A stretch of DNA of 64,000 nt from Dimorphilus gyrociliatus. Taxonomy: Eukaryota > Animalia > Annelida. Location of the stretch: positions 186,001-250,000 of the forward strand of contig CAJFCJ010000012.1 in NCBI GenBank assembly GCA_904063045.1, read 5' to 3'. The stretch's first letter is position 1; each line of letters begins with the position of its first letter. Below the pieces are notes generated by a model. That model had not been told where the DNA came from. It did no database searches and saw only the letters and a list, made by a program, of their open reading frames with translations. A program made the position numbers and the translations under genes. This document shows positions 33,201 to 56,173 of the stretch, one piece after another.

Positions 33201-34159
33201 TGTACAGCCAAATTCAACTTTCACCTTTAATTCTTTCTTATACAATCTGAAAAAAACTACAACAATGACTAATACTTCATCCAACCTGAATATAAATAAT
33301 AATTTGAATCAATAATATAGTAGTGTATGAAGAAAACTCGTGTAAGCTTTATCTAATATATATATATTTCCACTATAACCAATTACCTTACTTCTTTTTA
33401 AATTAGTTAATTAGTTGATATTTAATTAATAAATAATTTATTAATAATTAAGAAGTTTAGGAATATTTAAAAAGTTATGTTTATGGATAACTAAAATTTT
33501 AAATATATGTTTCTAAAGAGTTTAATTAAACAAGGAAAACTATCTTTATATGTTAAAATAGGAAAAGAAGCTAAAAATAATGAAAAAGTTAATGGTATAC
33601 AATTTTAAAAACATACTTAAAAACTTAAACTTTGGTCGTAAAAACCCAATTTAAAAAGGAAACGACAACCATAAAAGAGATTATTAGACAATTAGGAAGC
33701 GAGCAGGTGCGAATCACTATTAAGCAATAAAACTCGAATAAAATGAGACTTTCGAATTGGTAGATGAGCAGAATGTTAACGTCAGTAACTGTGACAAGCT
33801 GTTAATAGCGTCATTACGTGCCAGATGAATAATTGAAGAGACTACTGTTGTTTAGGAACAGATACTCAATACAAGGCTACGTAGTGATATAAATAAATAT
33901 ATATACAGCATATACAGTATATCTATACACGTGCTGGGTAAAAAATACTTGAATAACTAAAACTTTTTAACTGAATAAGTGTATATACTGTATATATATA
34001 TATAAAGTATATATGTGTATGTAGAGTATGTGCATCTGAATGCTTATAATTTATATAAGTGAGAATAGTTTTTATCTTCTACAGACTAATCGAATAAAGA
34101 AATCACCAAAGAATTATATAACATGAGATAAGAAACCCTCTATGTGTATATGTAAACAT

Positions 34160-34350
34160 TTCTACTGCGGTGGTAGGTGAATCGATGGCCGCCACTAATG
34201 CATCGTCAATACGGCGCCGGAACACAACTCCTATTAGCTTATTTACACTGCACAGTCAATTATAGGAAAATTAATGGTGCGACTGAGCACTGGGCGTAAA
34301 CAATGCTGCTGATTAGTGCCAGGCATCGCCCGCCGCTGGCGCTTCTTTTG
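34160..34350. promoter_or_regulatory. GC-rich non-coding island, putative enhancer upstream of the AUTS2-like gene
   Basis: CpG-containing patch in AT-rich desert, with a Fox-type GTAAACA, TAAT/ATTA cores and no sustained ORF. Confidence 0.35.
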
Positions 34351-36097
34351 TAGACAAAGAATCAGTTTTTAGGTATTCCTTTTTTTCCCCTCAAATACTG
34401 CTTTTATTTTCATCGAAAATCCCTTTATCACAAAATAATTAATGTCAAGAAATAATTTATACCATATATATATTGTATATATATGCAACGTATACAGTAC
34501 ATAATGTATATAAACACATATAAATATATATGGTTTGCAGGTAAAGGTGGAGAGGTGGTAATACAGTTTATAGATATGTACGCAAACTTAAGACAGAAAT
34601 ATTTACTTCATATATGACATATATATTTACATAAACTATTAGTAAACTCAGTTTGTAAAGGTAGGAGAATGCTAATGGTTAAAAAAAATATACCGCTATT
34701 CAAAGAAAGACCTTATATGTTTGAAATAAAAATACTGTATATATTAGTATACGATTCGTTTGCTTCTATGTACTTGTATTAAATCAATGCCCATTCATAA
34801 ATATCGTACAGAATACCAGCACGATTAACAACGCTCTTTAAGCCTTGATATTTCTTATATATTATTTAAATTTCGTAATTTTCTACAAATTCCCAACATT
34901 TTATTAATTATGCATAGGAATTGTGACGATTAAAGCTTCAAAACGAAAATACTTGGAAGAAGTTAACTAAATAACACTAATTATCCATGCATTATTTTTA
35001 CTTCCTAATTACTCTGGTTAATTAAGTATAGAGAATTAGATGAATTCTATATCAAAGTTAGACTAAATTAGTCAAGTATGTTAAAGACTTTTTCCTTAGA
35101 ATAAAAATGTCATTTACGACTTCTATCTTCAATGAATCAATTAGATTTAATCAATTTAGTTATTAGTAATTGGAAAACTAATTTCAATTATCCAATTAAG
35201 TGACTACTTTATATCAACAAATCAATATATTTAATCAGTTACTTATAGCATTGTCACGTTTTGTAACTTTACTTTCTAATATCTATCTTTTACATTAATC
35301 AATATAAAAACGACTATAAATCAGATGGAAAAGCTTTTTATATTATAGAAAAAGCCCGTATTTAGAGAGGTTTTCTGCGGTGAAAAAAAGTTGAAATATT
35401 CACTTTTTATCATCATTTTTTTGTGAAAAGAAAAATTTTCTTGAACTCTGATTTTTCAGTAGAAATAGATCTTAATGTAATGTTTCTTTCCGCTTTTTAG
35501 TAGAGTAGCTACTTTCTCTTTCCCAAGATATGTTGATAAATATCGGAAATGCTCTCAAAGCAGCAATGTACATAAATTTTTAAATGATATATTTATCATC
35601 CAGGGAGGGAAGATAATCATCGAAAGACCTCGATAGAGTGCTACATTGCCACTATAAACATCGATTACTCTTCTTACAGATCGCATTTCGAATAATTAAA
35701 ATCCTCTTGAGAGTTTGCTGAAGAATAACTGAAAAATAAGTCATGGAGAACTTATATCCCCCTAGAAACATTTTAGAGCGCTTTTAGTTTGAGCTATAAC
35801 GAAGGATTGAGCATCTTCGAAAATGATTACCCTTCGATAATTGTGTGGATTTCTTGGAATTAAAAATTACTATTTAAATCGGCTTTTGCTCATTTGTTTT
35901 ATCTTCTCTGAGGAATCTGCTATTGAGGGTGTTGTCTGCATCCTAATCAGAAATGATTAATTCGAATTGATTTTAATTTCTAAGAAACCTTTTATATGTC
36001 TAAACAAGGAGTACTTTACTCTTTTCATGATATCTTAATAGAGTGAGTATGGTACTTCAGAAAGGCATTTCAATGATAAAATGGAATCATAGATAAA

Positions 36098-39000
36098 ATG
36101 GACGTCAAGTCCATCAAGACCAATTCGATGCCTCTTTCAGATCAATGGTAAAGTAGACTAGTAGAGAACTTTGCACGAAAGAGGAAAGGATTGAAATGTA
36201 TAAAAGAAAAAGAGAAAAGAAAAGAAAGAATATGCAATCTATTCCTTTAAAAAAATTCTTCTTCCACTTCTTTTTGCATTAATCATTAACACAAAATCTA
36301 TTGTAATATACATTTTTTTGCATATGAATAAAACTGATAATTTATCTAATTTCCTCTTAAATATGTGAATAGTACAGAAAAAAAGCTAGATTAAAATCAC
36401 AGCCAATAATTCATAGGTTCAAACTGAAAAAAATGAAAAGAAAACTTTTTACGTCCGTAAAAGAGGTCAAGTAGAATTACAAAGTCATAAATTATTTAGT
36501 ATTTTAGGAGGATTTTTTTTTTAAAGTAAAAGTACAAAAAAAGATCTTGACAGACGAGAGAGCGAATAAGAAGGAGAAAGAGGAGGACGAAGAAGAGAAG
36601 ACAAAGAATAAGAGAAAAGAGTGAGCTGTATGAATAAAACTTTAAATTTTTTTTTGTGTTGAAGTTACCTACTATAAAATAAGCAGAGGAAATGATGGAA
36701 GAGGTTAAATTAACTATAAAATATTGTTCAAACAAGCGACAACACGTATAATTCATTCTTAAGTCTTTACTTTTAAATATTTAAAAAATATAAGTCCACC
36801 CTCTGCTGAGTGATTCTTTCTGAACAGTGTGGGACTTTGGCTCGTAAAACTAGCTTTTCTATAGGGTGGGCGGAATGATTGCTATGACTGTGTAAGTCGC
36901 GGAAGCGTTCCCTTTAGTTGTCATGGTGATACGCTTAGGGGGAGCAGCTTGATACTTTTGAACGGCCTTATTTTACACACACTTCGACGAAAAAGATAGC
37001 TTATGGTGCGAAGAAAACTTGGCGTTGTTTGTTTTTAAGCCTAATACTTCAAATGTATTACCAGTCAGGCTGCGCATGTTTGCAGAGTGTCAGTATTCAC
37101 TTCATTATACAAATGTCATATATAGGCGCTACGTCTTGGAAAGGTTTCTGTATGCTAAGAATATTAGAACATTTTTAATAAAACATTTTAATCCTTCATC
37201 GGTAATTAATCCGTCAGTATTCCTGCTAAATTAAACAGTACAATTTTTATTAGTGCTAATAAGAGAGTAACAATCCGAGATTAAAGTGGTTGATTATTCT
37301 TTACGCAAAGACAATGTAACAGAATAGTCATACTAATTGAAGTGTTCCCGTGAAACTACCTTAAGGAAATTAATTGCTTGCATTGGGCTAGTAGCTTATA
37401 AGTATATAGTTAACAATTATAAGCGTTCAAACTCTGGTATTCTTTACAAAAACCTTTTTCAAAAAAAGTACTCTTCTTAAATTACACCAAGATATGAGAA
37501 AGAAAAACATTTACCAAGCAAACCAGATTCAACTGAATATATTTCAAACAGTTTTATACATCTACAATTTTTTTCCTCTCTCTCTCTCACTCTCTCTCTC
37601 TCTCTCTCTCTGTCTCTCTTTTCCATTTTATCCTTCGTTTTTACGAAAGAATCAACTTTTCATTTGTCGTAAAAAAAAAAGTTTTCTGGAGAAATTAAAT
37701 CTCTTTTTTATGCTTTTGTGTTTGCTTTACTTTTATCTCTAAGTAGAAAAAAAACGAATGGAAAGAAGAAAAAGAAGAAACAAATCTTTTTTATGTCTTT
37801 TTTATCCGAAATCCCTTGCAGAGAGCATAGACATTCTACTAATATTATATATATATATATACAGTATATATACATATGTATATATACTGCATATACATTC
37901 TCTATATAATTACATCATAGAACTAACATTGAAATCAGTGACTGATTAGTTAGGGGAAAATGTCATATTTATCCCAATAAAAATCCTACCTCTAATCTGC
38001 ATCAAAAGGAAATCATCAGTAATTTTCTACTCAGAACGTATAATAGGTTGACATTCTAACGTTTGCAATATAAACTGGTTTGAAATTGTGGATCCCCTAT
38101 TCTCTACACGTTTTTTGGGACTAAAGTGTCATATAAACTATAATGTTGACATTATCAAATCAACTGAAATGTCATCTAAGATTATTTCTCTGAAAATCAT
38201 ATATGTAGTAATATATATATTATTATTAATATATCTATACTGTATATATGCTGTAATTGTTCAGTAGATGTATACAGTAAGTTTAATCTTTTCAACCTTC
38301 CCATCAAGAAAGAAACTTTTTCAGTCTCTATTGACCTGTTTGTTGTTTATTTTACTTTCAACGCTAATTGACTTGAATAAAAAATTAAGTCAAGACCTTT
38401 TCATTAATTAAAGCCCGTTGATTTTAGAATCCTTAACGTCTTCGATTTAATCTAATGAACTGTTAGTGAAGAAATAATTTATACTTTACGTAAATGCAAA
38501 AGAAAATTTAAATGCTGCTGTTACGGAAGTAATAAATGGACTCAGGAACCAGATATATTTAAATAGTTAGCCGAAACTATTCTTTCTATATTTGGAATAT
38601 ACAGTGAAATACATTATACCTACAAAAGTAGACCTTTCTATAAATACATTTATTATATAATAAATAGTATAATTTATTCAATATGTAAATTACATTTAAG
38701 ATATGCACTATAAAATATAAACAATCATTTCTGGATATTCTATGCCTTGCTGTTATTCTGCTACAGCTAACTGTAAATTCTTTAGGATAGCCCCAAAGAC
38801 TTCTGCTCCATTGTAAACACTTGCATAATTCAGTTATTTGTTACTTAGTACGTAACCTAAGACGTCAAATTTCGGAGAAGGAAAAAAAGCGTGACTGCTG
38901 CCATTTGCACCAATAGGCTGTTAAATTGATTTAGAGACGCGTCTGATTTCCCCAGCGACTGATGTATAAATCTCGTACTGCAGCCGTAAACGACGTAAAT

Positions 39001-42000
39001 TACATAACTTACGTTAGGGCTCGATCAACCGGCGCCCCCTTATCGATAGTTTCGCCGCGAGCCGCCAATATCTAGCACCTCTAAGTGAGTGGACGTGTAA
39101 CAAAAGAACGACGCTGATTGGTTGATGACTAACGAATAGTTACCACCATTTTCTCTACGAATTCCAGTCTAAGTCGAGGCAGCATGCTGTCTGTATCGGA
39201 TAGGCAAAAGTCTTCTCAAGGAGTCGATTTTCTTCAACAGGAATTAAATTCTCGATTCTTAGCTCTACAGGAGCAGCAACTTGCTACTTATTTTCCACAT
39301 TTTCATCAGCATCCTTTTGGTAATGTTCTGCCACATTCTCTCTACTCTCCCTTTTCGGTAAGTTCAATTGTATTAGTACTTATACAAAACGTTTAAGTAC
39401 ATTTAACTTCAGAAAGGATACTTTTCTCTCTACAAAAAATTAATATACAAATTCGTTTAATAGCAAAATACCCTAGATAATTCCGAGTGTCAAAGGACAT
39501 TACTTAAAAAAAAGCAATAGATGGCGTCGTATCTTAATTTAAAAGTAAGAACAGATTGAATATCTTCTCAATCGTTGAATTTAATTCGTCATTCAAACTA
39601 CCATTAAACAGATAAAAAGAAGGATAATTGTAAAATCATGTATTATTGTATAATGTATATCGAATTACGGAAATTAAAGGTTCTTTGTATACATTATACT
39701 TTACCAAATACCCAGTGCACAGTATAAAGATATAAACAATACCAATGCAAGTATCTTCATGTTTAACAATGATTAAACTGACCTTTGAAAATAAGTTCTA
39801 TATCAAGTTTTATAAGATAAAACTTACTCTTTGTGAAAAATTGAATGCTCATATCTTGTTGAAAGTGAGAAGAATAAAAAGAAACCGTTTTCTGTTGTAA
39901 AAGTAACGCACCATCAACTCTTGCTCTTACGTTTCACTCTGCCGTAAGTTTGTTATTAACACTTGGCGGGCTGCCAAGACTGTTGAGTTTGTCAATCGTT
40001 TTATCGTTAATCGCATTAATCCGCTTTCTATATTCCTAAGCGAATTTCGTAAGCGAAATGGTAGCTGAAAGTTTATCAGCTTTCCAAATCCCTATAGAGT
40101 CAGTTAATCTTATCAGTTGAGTGCTATTTTATCAGTTGTTTGTCATATTATTGTTTTCCTAGCTTTTAACTTGGAGTAGAAAGTCTTGTGTTTGATTAAC
40201 GATTCGCAATTTTGGTCTAGTTGTTGGGAGTTATCTAAAATTTGTTATGCATAATTAGGTTGTTAATGGAAATGATAGAATATGATGCCATGTGCGTAGC
40301 TAATGCACGATATAATTATAGTTTTATAAATTCACTTATCGTTCTCTCATTTACCACAACATCGTTAGCAAGATATTGTGATTTTTATCCTTGTCACCAT
40401 AAAAAAAGCGGTCTTTCAAAGCATTTAGAATTTTTAACATGAAAGAAAAGAATACCTTTTTGCTATTGATTTCTAATATGTGTACCTGTTATAAAATTTT
40501 AAAAGCTATGTACAAAAACGAGGCAAAGAAAATTGAATATCAAAGTGCTCATTAGATATCTAATCGGCCAAATGATTAATTATAACAAGAGGTTGTAAAC
40601 ACATATTATATTCTGGACGTCCTCGACGCTTTACTGAAAATAATATAGAAAAATTTAATGTAGCGTGAAATTGTTCTTAATTTATACATGTCGCTTTTTA
40701 TGGAAAATGGAATACTCTCTAGAGGAATTTATATATATATTTATAAATATACAGTGTATATTTATGTCAAAAAAACTAATAAAAAGAAATCAAGAGTCAA
40801 TATGAATAATGATCTGACGTAATCAGATGTCTATATTCAAGAGATGATATAGATTTAGGACGGGGCGGAATAAACTCCGATTAATCGAGCTTTCACTTAA
40901 TCCGATTTTAGGGAGAAAGCTTATACGGTACAGCTAAAAAAAATTATCTTGCTTAATTTCTATGGAAATTTCTATTCCAGAGGGAAACCAAACTACCTTC
41001 TCCGGCTATTGCACATCAGCACCAATTGAGAATGATGAGTGATCGCAAAGACAACCCTCAATCCTCGTTGAATTTACATCAACCACCGATTAATACTGTT
41101 CAGAAAGTAAGTATAAATTATTTTACTTATCTTTAAGCAATATAAATTTATAAATAAATATAATCAGCGGAGAGTTATATGCTTTGCACGTAAAACAAAA
41201 TACACAATCTATTCTGTATTTAAACCATACATGTGTACTATGATCAAAGTACGCTACTACACATAATAAGATTAGTACAGTTGAGTAAAATAGCAATGCA
41301 ATTGATTTTTGTAACGCCGTTAAAAATTAATGATATTGCATAAGAATAACTTGAATTATTTAAAATTATAGTAAGTCATCTTTTGTTCCAATGAATGAAA
41401 AATAAGGAAAGAATAAACATCTTTTAAAATAAGGTGTGAATACACTTGTTATTAATTCATTAGCAAACAATAAACCGCCTGTTTTGATTTCAAAGATGTT
41501 CTCTTCACACTTTCCATTGCTAACGCGATAAGATATTATTACAAAAGACTAATCTTCATAGCAATGTTGAACCATATATTTTAACATCCTTTCAACTATT
41601 TTATAAATCAGTATCAATAGTAATTCTACAGCAGTTCCGTTCGTCTAATACTTTCGAAATGTCTCCTTTGTAATACTCATACAATTTTTATTATATTAAT
41701 AGAAATAATCATTTGCATATCATTAAATATTTCTTAAGTTGTCTTGTATATTTAAGCAATCCATTTTATTGTATGCAGCAATATTGTATATTTACAGCTG
41801 CATTGTTTTGCCTAAAAGGAGTGCTTAAGTAAGATTTCTTCACTTAAAGAAAGGAATCTAGATTTATTTCTCTTTAATTACTCAGAAGTATTTAATTGAC
41901 CTAGTTGTAGAAAACTGTGCAATTTTAAATAAGCGAACAGCATGTTTAATCGACTTTCTTATCCTCCTTTTGCTTTTCTCTTCCTCTCTCTTTTTCTCCC

Positions 42001-42324
42001 TCTCTCAGCCATTCCCTTCGTTTGCTCAGATTCCGTTCCTGTTATAGTTCGTTAGGGTAATCTTTATCTCGTTAAAAAAATAAAGATTGTTTTTATAACA
42101 AGATTAACTTTAATTTATCTATTCAGCCTCAACTAGGCCGAAAATGGAGTGCAATGCACGTAAAAGTTGCCTGGGACATCTATTACAAACAACAAGCCGC
42201 TCAAACTTTAGCGAAAACACAAATGACAACCGAAGAACCGAAAACGACTGTGCCTTCACAAATATCGAATTTTTGTAAATTATCCAAAACGAAATTGATT
42301 TGGTCACCTGTCGATGATTCTTGA
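36098..42324 (+). CDS. AUTS2: Miniature AUTS2/FBRSL1/fibrosin/tay-bridge family protein, about 187 aa
   Basis: Exons 36098-36147 (in-frame stop upstream, TG|gtaaag), 39168-39357 (branch-like GACTAAC at 39127, gtaagt donor), 40981-41106 (gtaagt donor) and 42127-42324 total 564 nt in frame. The product contains DFLQQELNSRFLALQ...HFHQHPF (cf. AUTS2 DILRQELNTRFLASQ...EFHQHQH) and GRKWSAMHVKVAWDIYYKQQ (cf. AUTS2 GKWCAMHVHIAWQIYHHQQ). First exon is less certain than the other three. Confidence 0.8.
37576..37619. repeat. (CT)n microsatellite in an AUTS2-like intron
   Basis: Seen directly. Confidence 0.85.
38880..39121 (+). promoter_or_regulatory. Putative internal promoter and non-coding first exon of the AUTS2-like gene
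   Basis: CpG-rich stretch with CCAAT boxes (about 38910, 39065 and reverse 39117). A gtgagt donor at 39085 could splice via an 83-nt intron to the 39168 acceptor ahead of ATG 39184. Confidence 0.45.
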
Positions 42325-44696
42325 CGCTCTGTGTAGAGTGCGGCTGTGAAAAACCTCATTAAAATCATTAAATTCCTCCTAGTCACGCCATAATTATTAA
42401 ACGGAACGAGTTAAAGCGAACTTTTTCAAGTACTATCGAACAATTTTCGAGGCTTTTCAATCCGCGTTTTGCTTTTTCAATTAGCGAACTTTTTAGAAAA
42501 GTGTCACGTGATTAAAAATCGTTTACCAAATATATATATATATATACATTGTACTACATCTCTTCTTAAAAACGAATTCATGTGTATGATATTAATGTTT
42601 TGTTTGTATTTGTAAAATGCTGTGACGCATTTATAACGAAGGAAAAGTTATGAAATGTTATATAACTTACAAACTGTTGTTTATGCTCAGTTTAATTTTC
42701 TCTGAAATACAATTTTGCGTCATAATTACTATAATACTACTAATTTTTTATTATTCGATCAATTATATAATATGCTATAAGGACAATAGAGAAAAACATT
42801 TCTATTTCTAGCTATTCCCTTTAAAAGCCTTATTAGTTTTAAGGGCCAGTGCTGCAAAGTTCTCCTCTCAAAAAGCAGCTAATTTGCCCTTTAACGTATT
42901 AATAAGTTATATGTATACTGTACATACATTTACTATTTACAAACTTTATTCCTATTTTCTGTTGCATTGTTTAATATAAGTAATTTATTCGTAAATGCAA
43001 TTCTACATCACTTAAGAGTTTTTTCCAGTTTTATACCAATGTTCTTAATCATTTTCCATTTTCTTCTATTCCATTTGATAGAAATAAATAAAATAAACCT
43101 AAATTACCCTATTTGCATTAAAAATAATAAAAGAAAAATATATCATACAAGAATAACAAACGCAAACAAGACCCTTATAGAAATGTTCAGGTAATTTTTC
43201 TTATTTTTGTTAGTGATTCCCAGAATAAATGACAGCTATTTAAATTATAAAAGAGTAAATGAAGAAATGAATACATTAAGTGATGGAAAACATTGAAACA
43301 TTACCAGCATACAGATGACAAAAGAGCGTATCTATACAGTAGAGTTTTAGTCCGTATTTATCAATAATGAGCAACGGAAGTTACAAGATTATTCAATGAT
43401 TGATGTAGTATTAGAGAATTTTTTTTGTTTAACGATTGATGCAAAAAATATATATATGGATACTATTAGCTTGATAATATCCTTTTAAGATATTTTTCAA
43501 TTTTTCATAAAAGTATATAACATCGTTGTACAATCATTATCTTAAAAGACAAAACTGACAATTTTATATTATGATATATAAATTTCTTCTGACATATCCA
43601 AATACAATTTGCGCAACATATTTCCCTACTGTTTTATCCAGTTAACCCCCTTTTCCTTGCAAAGCTAAGGTTAACAAGTAATCAAACATATAATCTGCCC
43701 CTATAAGATAGAAAACGGCGTAACCAGTGAACAATTATTCAAAAAAAGTAACAAACTATAGATCGTTTTCGCTCGAAAAGAATCTGTTTGCCAATCGATG
43801 TAACTGCGGGCTAGATTATGGTAGAATGAGTTAGAAATTTGATATTGCGTAACGGATATGATCGTTTTTACGACTTCTTTTGATTATTCTGCTAGATTGT
43901 TTGACATGCTATTAGTATAATGTACACTGATGAATAAATTACACGTTTATTGTGCTGTAAATCTTTACCAATATTGACTAATTTGCTGGGAGAAATCGTT
44001 TAATGGTTCATTATAGTTGATACACGTTTATTAGTCACGCGACTTTTCCGTTTTTGTTTAGAGGTTATTAAATGATAAAAACACAATCAACAGATGTCAC
44101 CACAGCTAGGAAGATAATCTTTTGTTATAAAAACAAATCCCCGTCTATCCTACAAAAGATAAACTATTCATAATTTATGTGGCGACATCTGTTGGTATGA
44201 TATTTTGCTCTTGTCCTTTTTTCATTTTTTTTTTAAATAGCATTATTAAATATTTATATACAAGTAAATGAGATCGAGTTCCGAAAGGAAAAACATTTAT
44301 TCTTAGCATTTTATCAATTTTTTCTCACTAATTGCAAATGCCCGTCAAAAATCGGAAATGTAATGATTAATGAAATCGATTTTTAGTCTTTATAAATGAT
44401 ATTTAAGGAAAACTAGACTATTCCATTGTTCATATTAAAAAAAAAACTATTCACTTTAAAAAAATGATTATAGATTGATAATAGATCGTAATCTTTGTTA
44501 AGTTTGTCTATTCATATTTACAGGTAGTAGGACAACTGAAATAGAAATGTTTTACAAATTGGATAAGTTAATTCTTACTCAGAAACAAGTATTTAACTAA
44601 TATTGATAGAAGTATTCATGTTGTAAATAATAGCCAATTAATTATTTCTTCAAATACTGTATATTGAAAAAAAATCTAATTTAAAGTCTAATTACG

Positions 44697-45065
44697 TCAT
44701 TCTTCAAGCCCAGTTTCGAAAAGTGCAGGATCCCACAGATCGTATAGATCTTCTTCTTGGTTTTCCTCTTTGTCTTCTGAGTGTTCGTCTTGAGATTTTG
44801 CATAACTTTCGCTGTGTGACCCAAAATCATTTCCTTGTCTTCTTGGTGTACCACAATTAAATACTCCACATCCACCTATTATCATATTGAGAAACCTTTT
44901 TTCGAAATTTCTACAGAAATTATCAATCGAACAAATACATTCGTTCTTTCTAATGCAACAGTTTTCTCCAGTTTTTTCTCCCTTAGTTTGTATACATTGA
45001 AGTTTTTTAGGTAATGCTGATACTGCTACCAGGTATAAAGATAGAATTAAGAGTATACTTGACAT
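44697..45065 (-). CDS. Intronless secreted cysteine-rich peptide precursor (122 aa) with acidic C-terminal tail
   Basis: Signal peptide MSSILLILSLYLVAVSA, then 8 Cys spaced C-x11-CC-x5-C-x-C-x5-C-x14-C-x4-C, dibasic KR and RR sites, and a D/E-rich tail. The ordered architecture argues against a chance ORF. Confidence 0.7.
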   Translation of the reverse strand: MSSILLILSLYLVAVSALPKKLQCIQTKGEKTGENCCIRKNECICSIDNFCRNFEKRFLNMIIGGCGVFNCGTPRRQGNDFGSHSESYAKSQDEHSEDKEENQEEDLYDLWDPALFETGLEE

Positions 45066-50279: not shown

Positions 50280-53200
50280 ATGCAACCTGCTGATACAGTA
50301 CCAAATTCTAATTGGCCTAATTCGTTCGAACAAGAAGGTCAAAATCATATTTGGCCTAATATGCAGTGGCAGCAAGATGACGCGCAACAGCAACAGGGCG
50401 CTGCGTACATTCCGCCGAATCTTTCTATGCAGCAACCCTTATTTTATCCCAATCTGGTATGTTATCTATTCAAAGACAGCCAAGTCTTATCAACTAGATC
50501 AATTCTAGCAGTATTGAAATTTCATTCTCATTGTTAGAAGTATTACTAAAACCTATGCTAGAGACACACAAGCCAAAATATTTGGCAGTTTGAACGAATT
50601 GTTATATAAATACTCAAAAGATACCCTCCATTTCGAGCTAATATGTCTTACAAGTATTTACTTGTTAGAAATAATCAGTTTTAAAAAAGCTAGATTTTAT
50701 TGGTATGATTTATATTAAATGAGTTTATACAGATGTTTTTACACTTCCGCGTCTCATATTAGAGCTCAAATTTTTTTAATTTAAACGTGTTTATACACCT
50801 ATACTTTTACACCTGTTCCTGTAATATACAGGCCTAGGCAGTTATCCAGGCTATGAACATGAGATATTATTCATATTTTTTTTATAAAGATAGCGATACA
50901 TGAATAGAATCCCTGTTTTATTGCATTGGTCAATATTGAAAGCCCTTTTTTATTTAATATTTTTATATTAATACAGCAGTGTCAGATGTATCTTCGATCG
51001 ATTCAAGCCCAGCAGCAACAGCAAGCAGAAAGTCGGTCTTCAGCTAATGTCGCAAATTCCCAACCTTTTTTGCCCCATTCGGATCATCAGGTAAGCTATT
51101 TATAACTTTTTATGTAAGGTAGGAGGCAAGTTACAAGTTTATTGTGCGAAAGCCTTGTTTAAAAAATGATATTTTCTTTCCCTAATTGCTAAACGTAGTC
51201 TTATTTTCTATTGTTTTTCATAATTAAATCCTTTTCATCATATTTTCTAAGGTCGATTACTTTAAAATCATTTCAAAAAACTGTGTATGTTCAGTTCTTT
51301 GGAACTAGAAACAAGAGGTTGGAGGGTTTTGAACTCACAAACATAGTTAAATGAAAATTGGTGACACTTGTTTACAATATGATTAAATGTATTCGATGAA
51401 TCAAATTTCGTGCATTAGTGGTTGAATTAGCTAAATCTCATTATTTTTTATCAATTAGTGAACAAAATTTTCATAAAATATCCCGTAAACTTATATGCAC
51501 CCACCGCTTTTACTTTGATTGTATCGATCGCGACATAACTTACTGCGCCACCTGGTGAAAATTGTGCTGTTAGAAAAGAGACGTTCGATGCAATGTTTAC
51601 AGCTGGTCACAGATGTACGATTTGTGCACGTTCAACACCGGTTTCCATTCAAGATGATACAGCCGTAACGTCCTTTCTCTCGCCAGGAGATATTTTCTTT
51701 TTTTCGCATAATTCATACGTAGTGTGTGTCAAGAGGTCGTCGACACCATCTATTTTGCCAAAACGTGGAGATGGCTGGAAAAATAAACATTTTACTAAGA
51801 AAAAGAGGACGGATTCTACTGGGGTAGGCTATTCGATCAGTTTTGAAATTGAAATAATGCGTATTTTACGAGAAAACATATAAAATATGTTGCGTAATTA
51901 TTGATCCTCATAGGCGATGCCGGTAGAAGCTGGTTTCGTGGGCGTGAGACTTGTGTGCAATTTTTTTTTGTTTTACAAATTTCGGGCGTATTTTAATTTT
52001 TCTGACAATAACTGTTGTAAATTTTACTAAAAGGCCTATTTTCGGAAGACTCCAATAAATGGCCTATTCAATAGAGTACACCCATGATGTCATCTTGGAA
52101 ACTGGTATCTAACGAAAATATATCAGTGCTACTATATTATATATAGGTCTATTCTAATAATCATTCTGTAACTGTTAACAGAGAATTTTTATAGAGAATA
52201 TAATATTTTTATAGTTAGTCCTGCATTCTTCAAATTCTTTATATATTGTTTCACTGATTTGTCCACTGAGTAATATAATTGCTTCTACCAACTGATGATC
52301 AAATAAGTAACCTGAACATAAACTAAACCTAGGTTCTAAAGAGAGGCAATTTAGTAATATCTTAATAAAAGCTGCAACTCTATAAAGGAACTGAGTTGCT
52401 GAAAACGATCCTAATCTTTAAGTAACTTTACAAATAGAGCTTCAATTCATTATATAGTCATTTTGCCAAATGTCACTTCACTGTGACCTGCTGACAAGCC
52501 TGTTTTTCAACAAGTTATACATGTTTATAGAAAATTGGTAACACCAAAGCCCAATTAAACAATTCTTCAGTTCTACTCTAGAATCTTGATTATATATACA
52601 ATTGTCTTTCTTTATAACATCGAGTTTTATTTGAAAATATTTTTGAACAAGAGTTGTATGCTTGTCATATGATGCAGCTGTTAAAATGAAATTAACAATT
52701 GATTTAGTTAGTGAAACGAAAAAATCTTTTTTTTCTTACAACACTTGAGCTATTCTGTAACTTTTCACTCTTGAATATATGAAATATGTTGTCTAAAATC
52801 AGGGTATCATATTGTTTTTTTTCTCAAACAGCTAAATAAACTGAATCCAAATGCTAGCACTTTTCATGCGAAAAATGCTCCTGAAACACAACAACAGGCA
52901 AATGGGGCCAATGAATGGCAAGATGCTGAAAGCGAAGCATCTAATCAGTCTGGTAAGCTTTAAATATTTCCACCAAAATATATTCTAATTTCAATGTGAT
53001 TGAGAAAGATGTCATTAAAGAGAGACATACCAATAATCAAAATATGAACATCTTTCAATCATTGCCAATTCTATTAAATAAAAATTAAATTTTTCTCATG
53101 ATTAACAACTACGTACATATTCTAAAATTTTCTTCAACAGCAAATCAGTCAGAAGTCCTGCATCAACCTAATGGCGATATGACCCCAGTGGACGCTCCGA

Positions 53201-54091
53201 CATCAGCAATTCATGCACCAGGAGTTTATCTACCTGACGATCAAACCTTAGACAAAGTTCTTAATAAAGACGAATTGTTAAATCGACTTCGTTCGCAGCT
53301 GGAATATTATTTTCGCCGGGAAAATCTTTCAACTGACGCCTATTTACTGTCACAAATGGACTCTGACACGTACGTGCCAATTGTGACAATAGCAAAATTT
53401 AACCAGGTAACTGTCATGATACCCGTGATTGTACATGTAAGGAATTAAAATTGTTTACCATAGGTGCGTAAGCTAACGCAGGATATTAGTTTGGTCGTCG
53501 AAGCACTGAAAACGTCATCAGAGCTGCAGCTGGATGATAAATTCGAGAGGGTGAGGGCTGCTCAGAAGCGCTGTGTCGTAATTCTGAGAGAAATTCCTCA
53601 GTCAACACCTGTTGATGAGGTAAATATTGTTAAATTTAAAAAGTTTCAATTTTTGTACACTTGTTTGTTAATTCCAGGTAAAAGGCCTCTTTAACTCTCC
53701 GGAATGTCCAAAATTTGTTAGTTGTGTGCATGAGCATAATGATGCATGGTATGTCAATTTTGAAACAGAAGAAAAAGCTCAGACTGCCTATCAATATCTG
53801 CGGGAAAATGTTCAGACTTTCTTGGGAAAGCCTTTGATGGCAAGGATCAAGGCAAAACCGGCCGTAACACCAAGGTCCTTTTATCCGTCTTCAAAAGCGA
53901 ATTCCCAAATTTCCCGATCAGTAAATTTAACGAGACAGCAATCTTCTGCTACTCCCATTTCTGTATCGGGATCCGTAGCTTCTACTGCTTCAGTCACCCA
54001 GCAACCACCAACGCCTTCTGAAACACCAACTTCGCAGTCTCAACCTCAGCAACAACAACAGCAGCCACAGCAGCAACAACAACAGCAACAA

Positions 54092-54123
<32 letters not shown>

Positions 54124-55939
54124 ACAGAATCAATTATTACAGCATCCTTTAACAATGATACCTCCACTTTACCCAAGTGCTAATGCAATCCCGCAATTAA
54201 TGGCGCTTAGTCAGCAGCAGCAGCAGCAACAAGTCGCTACATCTTCATATAATCAAACTCAACAAACAGCTGCTCAGCAGCAGTTGTCTATGTTTCCTAC
54301 TCAGAATTTCTTTCCTATCTTCCAGTATCAACCAACTACGGACCCGAGTACAGCATTTATGGCTCGAGGATACACAGTTGGTAGTCAGATAAGTGGAGGA
54401 GGTTCTGGATCTAATAGTGGAGGGAATGGCCAACAAGCTGGACAGAAAAACTATCAGGGAAGAAATAGTATAGGTTCAAATGGAGGACGAGGTTCAAATA
54501 GCGCAAATGGGACCAGAAGCAGCCCTAGAGCACAAAGTGGCGTTATGAATGGTGAGTGAAGAACTTAAGTTATTCTAAATGTAGGCATTCTAAATTGTTT
54601 GCACCAGTACTAATTGGTCGTGATACTAAAACATAAGCTATATTTTCACTGGTCACCAAGTCGTACTATTTAGATTTTACATGTTGATATATTTATATAT
54701 AATGCATAGTTGATTGACAAGAGTTATTGAGATGATTTTTTGTTATTAGCGAGATCAGAATATCCGGCACGCCAGCAACGCAACGAAATAGCGCAAACTC
54801 ATTCAATGCAACCGCATCCTGTGCATGGAGTTGTCCACCAGAAAAACGTCGATGTGATGCAAGCAATGCAACAAGTACTAGGCCATCAAATACATCCGAA
54901 TACTCAGATGCCACCTCGTTATTCGTATGTATAATTTCGAAATATCTAAGTTCAATTTTAACTCAATTTCCCTTACAGTCGACAGACAAATCAACAGTTT
55001 TCTCGAAATCGAGGTCGCCGAAGAGATGAAGATGAAATTAAACAACCCAGAAGAATGGATGGCGGTTCCATTATAAAAAACTCCAGGGATTCCAATTTTC
55101 AATTGGAGTCAAACTCTTTTCCGCCTTTACCCGGTGCTAATGTGAGAATTTTTTAGGGTAAAATTTGGCTCTTTCTTCATTGTGACTTTTCATTTCAGAG
55201 TAAATCGAACGAAAACGTTCAATCGAATGCCTCATCAGAGCGAATGAGCGATGTCGTGAAGGGTACGACTAAAACACCAACCCCTCGTGAGACAACGCCT
55301 GCATCCGTCAGCAGTGTAGAGCATAAGACTCCTCCTAAGCAACAACCGACAGCAAATGTAACCGAAACGACTGTCGCTGATGTGGAAGCGATAACAAATG
55401 GCCTTAACTCCGTACAAGTAAAAAAAGAAACAACCTCTAAAAATTCAAGCGCGAGATCGTCTTTATCACCTCAGTAAGTGATTTTATCTTTGTTAGGTAT
55501 GCAGGAAACAAGAAAGCAAATACTTCAATTGAGAACTTTTAAGGGGATATTGCAATCCACTCTTCTTGAAGTACATGAGTTAATTAATAAGGCAATTTTG
55601 TAAATGATGACAAACTCGCTCTTGACAAATGTGAGAGTTATGTGTGATTTAATGAGTCTGATAAATTTATAAAGCTATTTCCAAGTCATCGAAAGTTAAT
55701 CTTTGAACTCTTTTAGATATATATTTCTTATTAACAGGGCTTCAGCCGCTTCGGAAAACAACAACAAGCCTTCTCAACAAAGTTCCAGTCCTGCTACTTC
55801 TTTAGCGTCAGTTGTTGCTGGGAAAATATGGAAAACTCCAGCAAACAATATGAGCTATGCGCAAAAGGTAGCTCAGGCTTCGCAGCGTGATGGTGTTGTC
55901 ACTTCTCCTGAACCAGAATCGATACCGCCTGCAAACGGC

Positions 55940-55973
<34 letters not shown>

Positions 55974-56173
55974 GTAACAGTAGTAGCAATACCCAAGCTG
56001 CCACTGAAGCCACGCCTCAATCTCCAAGTCGAGCTCCAAGCGATAGTAACACTCAGCAAAGTAACTCGTATAGAGGAGGATTTAGGCAACGTGGTTCTAG
56101 ACCTGGATTCAGGCCTAGAAATGAAAGAAGAGCACACTATCGACCCGTTAACACAAACGGAGCGTCAAAATAG
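50280..56173 (+). CDS. LARP4: La-related protein 4/4B (LARP4 family), long isoform about 918 aa
   Basis: Exons 50280-50456, 50977-51090, 52832-52952, 53141-53406, 53464-53619, 53678-54551, 54750-54924, 54979-55141, 55199-55473, 55738-56173 (2757 nt, in frame). Motifs: PAM2 LNPNASTF, La motif ([24 protein letters not shown]), RRM ([10 protein letters not shown]...HNDAWYVNF...ARIKAK), and LARP4-type C-terminal [13 protein letters not shown] and RMSDVVKG. Confidence 0.92.
51917..51943 (+). CDS. LARP4: Candidate alternative first coding exon of LARP4 (MPVEAGFVG)
   Basis: ATG...GGC|gtgaga is a phase-0 donor that joins in frame to the PAM2 exon at 52832. It lies at the end of a CpG-enriched, promoter-like stretch (about 51500-51950). 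Confidence 0.5.
54047..54127 (+). repeat. Coding CAG/CAA repeat (Q6-P-Q20) in LARP4
   Basis: 20 consecutive mixed CAG/CAA codons at 54068-54127. Confidence 0.95.
55940..55972 (+). repeat. Coding (AAT)10-AAC repeat (poly-Asn, N11) in LARP4
   Basis: Seen directly in the terminal exon. Confidence 0.95.

Follow-up and report, generated by a model that had tools for sequence, protein, structure and literature searches.

The AUTS2/tay family has been divided by Sellers et al. (2020; PMC7732068) into eleven conserved regions, and the supplementary table of that study prints the corresponding vertebrate and mollusc sequences. In the autism-linked AUTS2, binding of PCGF5/RING1B maps to the first 208 amino acids (aa) and that of WDR68 and SKI to residues 600-700 (bioRxiv 10.1101/2021.06.29.450402); the short AUTS2 isoform binds WDR68 and SKI and does not bind Polycomb repressive complex 1 (PRC1) (bioRxiv 10.1101/2021.06.29.450402; review PMC9008325). 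Residues 1-163 of FBRSL1 bind the RAWUL domain of PCGF3, and an Atrophin-1-like core, which corresponds to AUTS2 492-614, constitutes an effector module (bioRxiv 10.64898/2026.10.20.760506). A modelling preprint places a predicted DCAF7-binding helix within AUTS2 600-700 (bioRxiv 10.64898/2026.05.13.724911). Within this disease gene family, conservation is highest in Regions 5 and 8, the function of which is still poorly defined. Here, we analyze a 64-kb stretch of the genome of the annelid Dimorphilus gyrociliatus (assembly GCA_904063045.1, contig CAJFCJ010000012.1, positions 186,001 to 250,000; hereafter the window, with positions counted from its first nucleotide), which is AT-rich, with a guanine-plus-cytosine (GC) content of 25-32% across most of its length. 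On its forward strand the window carries a predicted gene of this family that corresponds roughly to AUTS2 485-670 with a much shortened interior, and that comprises Regions 5 and 8 and a vestige of Region 6.

Identification of AUTS2-Family Exons

An earlier note, made from the letters of the window, had described a miniature protein of 187 aa encoded by four in-frame exons (here E1 to E4) that end at the TGA at 42322-42324. Inspection of the sequence confirmed the AG/GT borders, the compatible phases, and the sum of 187 codons. The sequence landmarks named in that note, that is QELNSRFL, a truncated FHQH tract, and the W-x-AMHV block, are all present: the translation of E2 (...GVDFLQQELNSRFLALQEQQLATYFPHFHQHPFGNVLPHSLYSPFS) includes QELNSRFL and FPHFHQHPF, and that of E4 begins with PQLGRKWSAMHVKVAWDIYYKQQAAQTLAK, contains the block as KWSAMHVKVAWDIYY (42142-42186), and has VDDS as its C-terminal end before the stop codon. 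Once a related genome is taken into account, as described later, the conserved open reading frame (ORF) is predicted to be 165 aa long (58 + 42 + 65), from the ATG at 39184 to the TGA at 42324, and to consist of coding exons A, B, and C, which are E2 from this ATG onward, E3, and E4 (table 1). Its introns have lengths of 1,623 nt and 1,020 nt, with an additional 3,020 nt if E1 is used. Candidates for extra in-frame exons within the introns were rejected, as they fall in conserved elements that lack periodicity and look noncoding.

Pfam searches were done exon by exon. E4 alone matches the Auts2 domain model (PF15336; E value 2.3e-7, 31.5 bits, curated gathering cut-off 23), whereas E2 and E3 searched singly matched no Pfam model. 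No profile exists for Region 5. Short motifs (14-27 aa) from published sequences were scored in all six frames of the window, and the Lottia Region 5 motif found its single best match on E2 (score 44, next best 25, z 5.9), and the octopus Region 8 motif its top match on E4 (score 65, next best 22, z 7.6). The worm sequence DFLQQELNSRFLALQ (39226-39270) conforms to the Region 5 motif D-[FL]-L-x-Q-[ED]-L-N-x-R-[FL]-L-A and lies N-terminal to Region 8, which exon 14 of AUTS2 encodes and where KWSAMHVKVAWDIYY conforms to the motif W-x-A-[MV]-H-V-x-[IV]-A-W-x-I-Y. Within the Region 5 stretch of exon A, 11 of 15 residues are identical to the vertebrate AUTS2 counterpart DLLRQELNTRFLASQ, and the Lottia counterpart is SDFLHQDLNNRLLAH (supplementary table, PMC7732068). 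Because exon C matches PF15336 and the Region 5 and Region 8 motifs each have a unique top match in the window, we assign these predicted exons to the AUTS2/tay family, from which they derive; the family identity proposed in the earlier note is thereby borne out, its motif-based reading now being joined by a profile hit above the cut-off.

The other regions of the family are reduced or missing. The HX (HQHQ/HTHQ) repeat of Region 6, which had been noted as nearly lacking, is indeed reduced to HFHQH, with three alternating His compared with 8-10 in vertebrates and molluscs. The PPxY (WW-binding) motif, which precedes the HX repeat in AUTS2 and most ancestral-type protostome proteins, is absent; the corresponding worm stretch is QQLATYFPH, compared with PPSY or PASY in molluscs. 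In the six-frame scan of the window, only background scores were obtained with motifs for Regions 2, 3, 4, and 7 and for the stretch after Region 8. N-terminal Regions 1-3 (EEDIIDGFAI..., GY.CDSE...), which are responsible for PCGF3/5 docking, are absent from the ORF, with only background scores within the window. Regions 9-11, which make up the later part of the Auts2 domain and the C-terminus, are absent as well, as the ORF ends 44 residues past the Region 8 motif. The suggestion that this protein defines the irreducible functional core of AUTS2, in the sense of its PRC1 function, finds no support, since the PCGF/RING1B-binding Regions 1-3 are found neither in the ORF nor anywhere in the window.

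Conservation in a Related Genome and Purifying Selection

A contig of a related animal (L001; Logan, SRR23372229) can be aligned over window positions 35.9-50.5 kb. The contigs with this locus stem from coral metatranscriptome libraries, have lengths of 8-19 kb, and are colinear with both exons and introns; therefore, they represent genomic DNA of a related animal and not transcripts. The presence in coral metatranscriptome libraries of unspliced contigs of a dinophilid-like worm, at a depth of 10-39, points to small-annelid genomic DNA in these samples.

Nei-Gojobori counts were made per exon and summed without joining the sequences. Over a total of 135 codons (exons A and B and the first 35 codons of exon C), there are 40 synonymous and 5 nonsynonymous differences, giving a synonymous divergence (dS) of 0.72, a nonsynonymous divergence (dN) of 0.016, and a dN/dS of 0.022. 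The relative has kept the splice sites of E2-E4, and frame, start, and stop are intact in both species. Because the differences sit on third positions and are synonymous at 40 to 5, the substitution pattern identifies the locus as a protein-coding gene under strong purifying selection, translated rather than a relic. The same pattern makes it very improbable that the exons are decaying remnants of a lost AUTS2 gene that persist only through overlap with cis-regulatory DNA: although the locus is full of conserved noncoding elements and conservation in the 3' third of exon C acts on nucleotides and not on codons, as such a relic would have it, the third-position differences are a signature of translation, and the frame, splice sites, start, and stop have not decayed in either species. 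A pseudogene is ruled out by the ratio of synonymous to nonsynonymous differences.

A phmmer search with exon C against 1.84 billion representatives gave one true match, an 82-aa ORF on the relative's contig, along with a repeat-protein artefact, and no match other than this ORF came from word-based searches with exon A or exon C. The PDB yielded nothing useful, only a chance haemoglobin-zeta match, the ESM Atlas gave no match, and a literature search for the motif strings gave nothing. The public protein collections searched yielded no other protein with the exon C sequence, and the gene appears to be absent from them. One gene call on the relative's contig (P0003, 149 aa, Logan) translates the stop codon TGA to W (...VDDSWRSM), an artefact that arises because the caller applied another genetic code and that is not evidence for read-through.

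These searches also bear on whether there is a second family member elsewhere in the genome, either full-length or an N-terminal PCGF-docking half, with the present locus being a specialised short paralogue or the 3' half. Vertebrates make long and short isoforms by means of an internal promoter that lies close to the corresponding site (PMC9008325; bioRxiv 10.1101/2021.06.29.450402), which lends such a fission or duplication some plausibility. Against this, Sellers et al. found one Auts2-region protein per protostome examined (PMC7732068), and the phmmer search with exon C, which is blind to a gene without Region 8, recovered only the ORF of the relative. Overall, we consider a second gene quite unlikely.

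Ends of the Gene

The earlier note had counted E1 as a coding exon. In the relative, the ATG of E1 is ATT, the block 36101-36200 is nearly identical across and past the putative donor, and the CGA at 39175-39177, which lies in the E1-E2 frame 6 nt upstream of the ATG at 39184 and downstream of the E2 acceptor AG (39166-39167), is TGA. Because the relative has ATT in E1 and an in-frame TGA before exon A, we place the start of the conserved ORF at the ATG at 39184, upstream of which in-frame stops are present. The 22 extra N-terminal residues of the earlier model would at best be species-specific, and E1 is probably a noncoding 5' exon or a conserved noncoding element. Of the miniature protein proposed earlier, then, the idea of a short ORF is probably right at this locus, where it is conserved under strong purifying selection, and the length becomes 165 aa instead of 187 aa.

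The stretch 38860-39183 directly upstream of the ATG is more similar to the relative than are the coding exons and contains CCAAT and TATAAA motifs (table 1), from which we infer that it comprises a promoter and the 5' untranslated region (UTR). RNA folding of this block revealed nothing special, and a bacterial promoter scan, which is irrelevant here, found nothing. Apart from junk, the + strand from 28 to 39 kb contains no ORF of at least 70 aa, and there is no convincing coding ORF between the upstream gene for a G protein-coupled receptor (GPCR) and E2.

At the other end, only 3 differences from the relative occur in ~300 nt between codon 36 of E4 and ~42525, where conservation stops just past an ATTAAA that lies ~190 nt past the stop codon and is probably the polyadenylation signal. 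This 3' conserved stretch has no Rfam match and no unusual RNA fold. The pattern fits a contiguous terminal exon with a regulated 3' UTR. Downstream exons encoding more of the Auts2 domain were considered and rejected: of 50 ORF pieces listed on the + strand, the 10 that were scanned (8 in conserved blocks and 2 others) include no Auts2 match, and the rest look like AT-rich noise.

These ends decide whether the locus is a complete short gene or whether the exons form just the conserved central part of a large gene of the usual AUTS2/tay type, the N- and C-terminal exons of which are too diverged, too small, or too distant to be recognised. Several observations weigh against a complete short gene. 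The described family members are all 770-2,700 aa and thus large, and a member of 165 aa is without precedent (PMC7732068). The Pfam match spans only profile positions 3-33 (31 of 218), and the search for other family regions covered the 64-kb window only. The RNA runs that contain the locus, which are the coral metatranscriptome libraries, hold unspliced contigs and no spliced transcript was seen in them; both transcript ends and all junctions thus rest on models and are not fixed by RNA, and small or strongly diverged additional exons may exist. Within exon C, the GTAAAT at 42278 may serve as a splice donor, and the last 30 codons show 0 synonymous changes at ~20 synonymous sites where ~9 are expected; therefore, this tail is constrained at the nucleotide level and its translation is not proven. 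The unusually long introns, the many conserved blocks at the locus, and the perfect conservation of E1 and its donor would likewise suit a large gene. We nevertheless regard a large gene as unlikely. The relative has an in-frame TGA between the E2 acceptor and the ATG at 39184, the Region 2/3 motifs, which are normally very well conserved, are absent from the six frames of the window, and the upstream neighbours on the same strand, the GPCR gene among them, are unrelated. Moreover, the conserved blocks outside the exons lack codon periodicity, and the UTR-like block ends at the ATTAAA and is followed by a gene on the opposite strand.

Proposed Function and Significance

We propose that the single AUTS2/tay-type gene of protostomes has here been cut down to an ORF of 165 aa in three coding exons, which would make up the complete gene. 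It would have kept Region 5 (QELN.RFL), with which the Atrophin-1-like effector core begins, as well as three His of the HX repeat and the W.AMHV.VAW.IY helix of Region 8, with which the Auts2 domain begins. It would have lost N-terminal PCGF3/5 docking, PPxY, the larger part of the HX repeat, and everything that follows Region 8 in the Auts2 domain and the C-terminus. Transcription would probably start from the upstream CCAAT/TATA promoter-like block, possibly also via an upstream noncoding exon, and the transcript would probably end at the ATTAAA. Because the counterpart of AUTS2 1-208 and FBRSL1 1-163 is missing from the ORF, association with noncanonical PRC1 (ncPRC1.3/1.5) through the RAWUL domain of PCGF3/5 is not expected, and the protein would lack ncPRC1 docking as the vertebrate short AUTS2 isoform does. 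The Region 8 helix would provide a small-partner contact with WDR68/DCAF7, possibly also with SKI, and Region 5 a second contact surface. Taken as a whole, a reduced, PRC1-independent AUTS2/tay gene that acts as a small DCAF7/WDR68 partner is our best explanation of the locus, and we hold it to be moderately probable.

An AlphaFold2 model of exon C from the single sequence contains a helix at residues 9-32, predicted with moderate confidence (predicted local distance difference test ~73-83). In human AUTS2, we take LRKPGKWCAMHV to be the DCAF7-binding helix, from our own fit of the published regular expression to the human sequence. A further point that speaks against the proposed partner is that, of the 6 positions which this expression defines, the worm sequence PQLGRKWSAMHV agrees at only 3 (Q, A, and V). 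The octopus orthologue likewise fails at two positions, so the expression seems to be tuned to vertebrates.

It may even be, although we are doubtful, that the 165-aa protein is the only AUTS2-family gene product of this worm, in which evolution has done away with docking to Polycomb, with p300/HX recruitment, and with the entire C-terminus, and has kept just Region 5 and the Region 8 helix under very strong selection. If so, the ancestral, indispensable job of the family would be PRC1-independent, for example in a complex of the DCAF7/WDR68-SKI type, Regions 5 and 8 would be one functional unit, and the cis-regulatory landscape around them would match that of a developmental master gene in complexity. 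A natural protein that has only Regions 5 and 8 and evolves with a dN/dS of ~0.02 would mark them as a self-sufficient module, and the 165-aa ORF would offer a minute construct with which binding to DCAF7/WDR68, SKI, and p300/CoREST and the structures involved could be studied. Such a protein also speaks for the view that, of the activities of AUTS2 proteins, the PRC1-independent one, which is linked to the more severe 3' patient mutations, can be the one that is kept.

Genome Context

Alignment with the contig of the relative reveals a dense conserved noncoding landscape around this gene, which is very small and lies in a compact genome. Five blocks (36690-37140, 38860-39168, 39904-40355, 42232-42525, and 43800-44050) are 90-99% identical to the relative despite a dS of ~0.7. 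An Rfam search and RNA folding of the ultraconserved blocks found nothing. The introns of the AUTS2-like gene are 1.0-1.6 kb compared with ~60 nt in neighbouring genes, and the published median intron length in D. gyrociliatus is 66 nt (PMC7854359). Long introns and flanks with conserved elements are as expected for a developmentally regulated gene, and the locus would present a case of coding reduction in the compact Dimorphilus genome with a large conserved regulatory landscape left in place.

Table 1. Features of the AUTS2-like locus and its neighbours (positions in the window; differences and identities relative to the related animal)
Feature	Position	Strand	Remarks
GPCR gene	17.8-28 kb (end ~28.0 kb)	+	unrelated upstream neighbour, as are others on the same strand
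E1 (exon 1 of the earlier note)	36098-36147	+	ends TG|gtaaag
Conserved noncoding element	36690-37140	.	in the E1-E2 interval (3 kb); ~90% identity, no 3-base periodicity
Promoter-like/5' UTR block	38860-39183	+	~97% identical, above coding exons; GC-richer than surroundings
Motifs in upstream block	CCAAT 38910-38914, TATAAA 38965-38970, CCAAT 39065-39069, ATTGG 39117-39121	+	from sequence
E2	39168-39357	+	preceded by ttccag, followed by gtaagt
Coding exon A	39184-39357	+	58 codons; conserved start Met, Region 5 DFLQQELNSRFLALQ, vestigial HX tract FPHFHQHPF; donor gtaagt conserved; 25 synonymous, 2 nonsynonymous differences (E2 from ATG)
Conserved noncoding element	39904-40355	.	in the 1.6-kb intron; many TAAT cores; ~95% identity, no codon periodicity; open AG..GT pieces look noncoding
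E3	40981-41106	+	acceptor side ttccag, donor side gtaagt; 7 synonymous, 2 nonsynonymous differences
Coding exon B	40981-41106	+	42 codons; linker without recognisable family motif; conserved acceptor and donor
E4	42127-42324	+	preceded by ttcag, terminates in TGA
E4, first 35 codons	42127-42231	+	8 synonymous, 1 nonsynonymous difference
Coding exon C	42127-42324	+	65 codons and TGA; Region 8 GRKWSAMHVKVAWDIYYKQQ, then 30-residue tail
Probable 3' UTR	42325-42540	+	3 differences in ~200 nt; ATTAAA 42511-42516
Conserved noncoding element	43800-44050	.	downstream; ~98% identity, no codon periodicity; ORF pieces without Pfam Auts2 match
8-Cys secreted-peptide gene	44697-45065	-	opposite strand; counterpart L001 10200-10565 (-)
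Promoter region of next + strand gene	~49.2 kb	+	downstream neighbour
La-motif (LARP-like) gene	53098-56173	+	introns ~15-30 nt between ORFs; long poly-Q tract 53726-54559

Among the neighbours, the 8-Cys secreted-peptide gene is very fast-evolving compared with the AUTS2-like gene and barely alignable between the two species, as blastn aligns its two ends only; an exact look-up of the peptide showed that it is not on record. The LARP-like gene illustrates the usual tiny-intron style of this genome. An isolated GC-rich island at 34150-34400 (39-47% GC amid ~25% GC) contains no convincing ORF, transfer RNA, or Rfam match; it may be a regulatory element or an upstream promoter, and the contig of the relative ends before it. 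On the - strand at 35419-35568 there is a weak full-length match to an H/ACA small nucleolar RNA (ceN59; 28.6 bits, gathering threshold 50, E value 0.47), which is probably due to chance.

Comparison with Known Systems

The closest parallels to the predicted worm protein are the vertebrate short isoforms, namely mouse Auts2-S, which begins in exon 8, and human AUTS2-C (711 aa), with a transcription start site at exon 9, both of which arise from an internal promoter. Like these isoforms, the worm ORF has no N-terminal PCGF5/RING1B-binding part and retains Region 8 in the interval equivalent to residues 600-700, to which WDR68 and SKI bind, and its start just upstream of Region 5 is near the start of the mouse short form. 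However, the short isoforms are ~700-800 aa and contain the whole Auts2 domain and a long C-terminus, and human AUTS2-C begins past the HX repeat. The short isoforms also come from a full-length gene, whereas the worm locus is without a detectable long form.

The ancestral-type protostome proteins, aAUTS2p, belong to the same family and include those of Crassostrea (1,047 aa), Lingula (1,099 aa), and Camponotus (1,259 aa) (PMC7732068). Regions 5 and 8 occur in them in the same order as in the worm; the mollusc motif SDFLHQDLNNRLLA aligns with worm VDFLQQELNSRFLA, and the mollusc Region 8 motif aligns with worm GRKWSAMHVKVAWDIYYKQQ. In aAUTS2p there are eleven regions, an HX repeat with 8-10 His, and in most cases PPxY; only two regions and three His are present in the worm ORF, which has no PPxY and is ~6-7 times shorter than the aAUTS2p proteins.

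Two further groups mark the range over which the family has diverged. Drosophila Tay bridge (2,486 aa) is a divergent protostome member in which Region 8 is the best conserved element and is common to the worm gene; Tay diverged by expansion, whereas the worm gene appears to have done so by reduction. FBRSL1 and FBRS have the Atrophin-1-like core and the Auts2 domain in common with the family of the worm gene, and their layout, with N-terminal PCGF3 docking and a central effector region, shows which parts are missing from the worm protein. They differ from it in being vertebrate paralogues of ~460-1,050 aa that have kept PCGF3 docking, and in FBRSL1 it is the core that recruits CoREST/CTBP.

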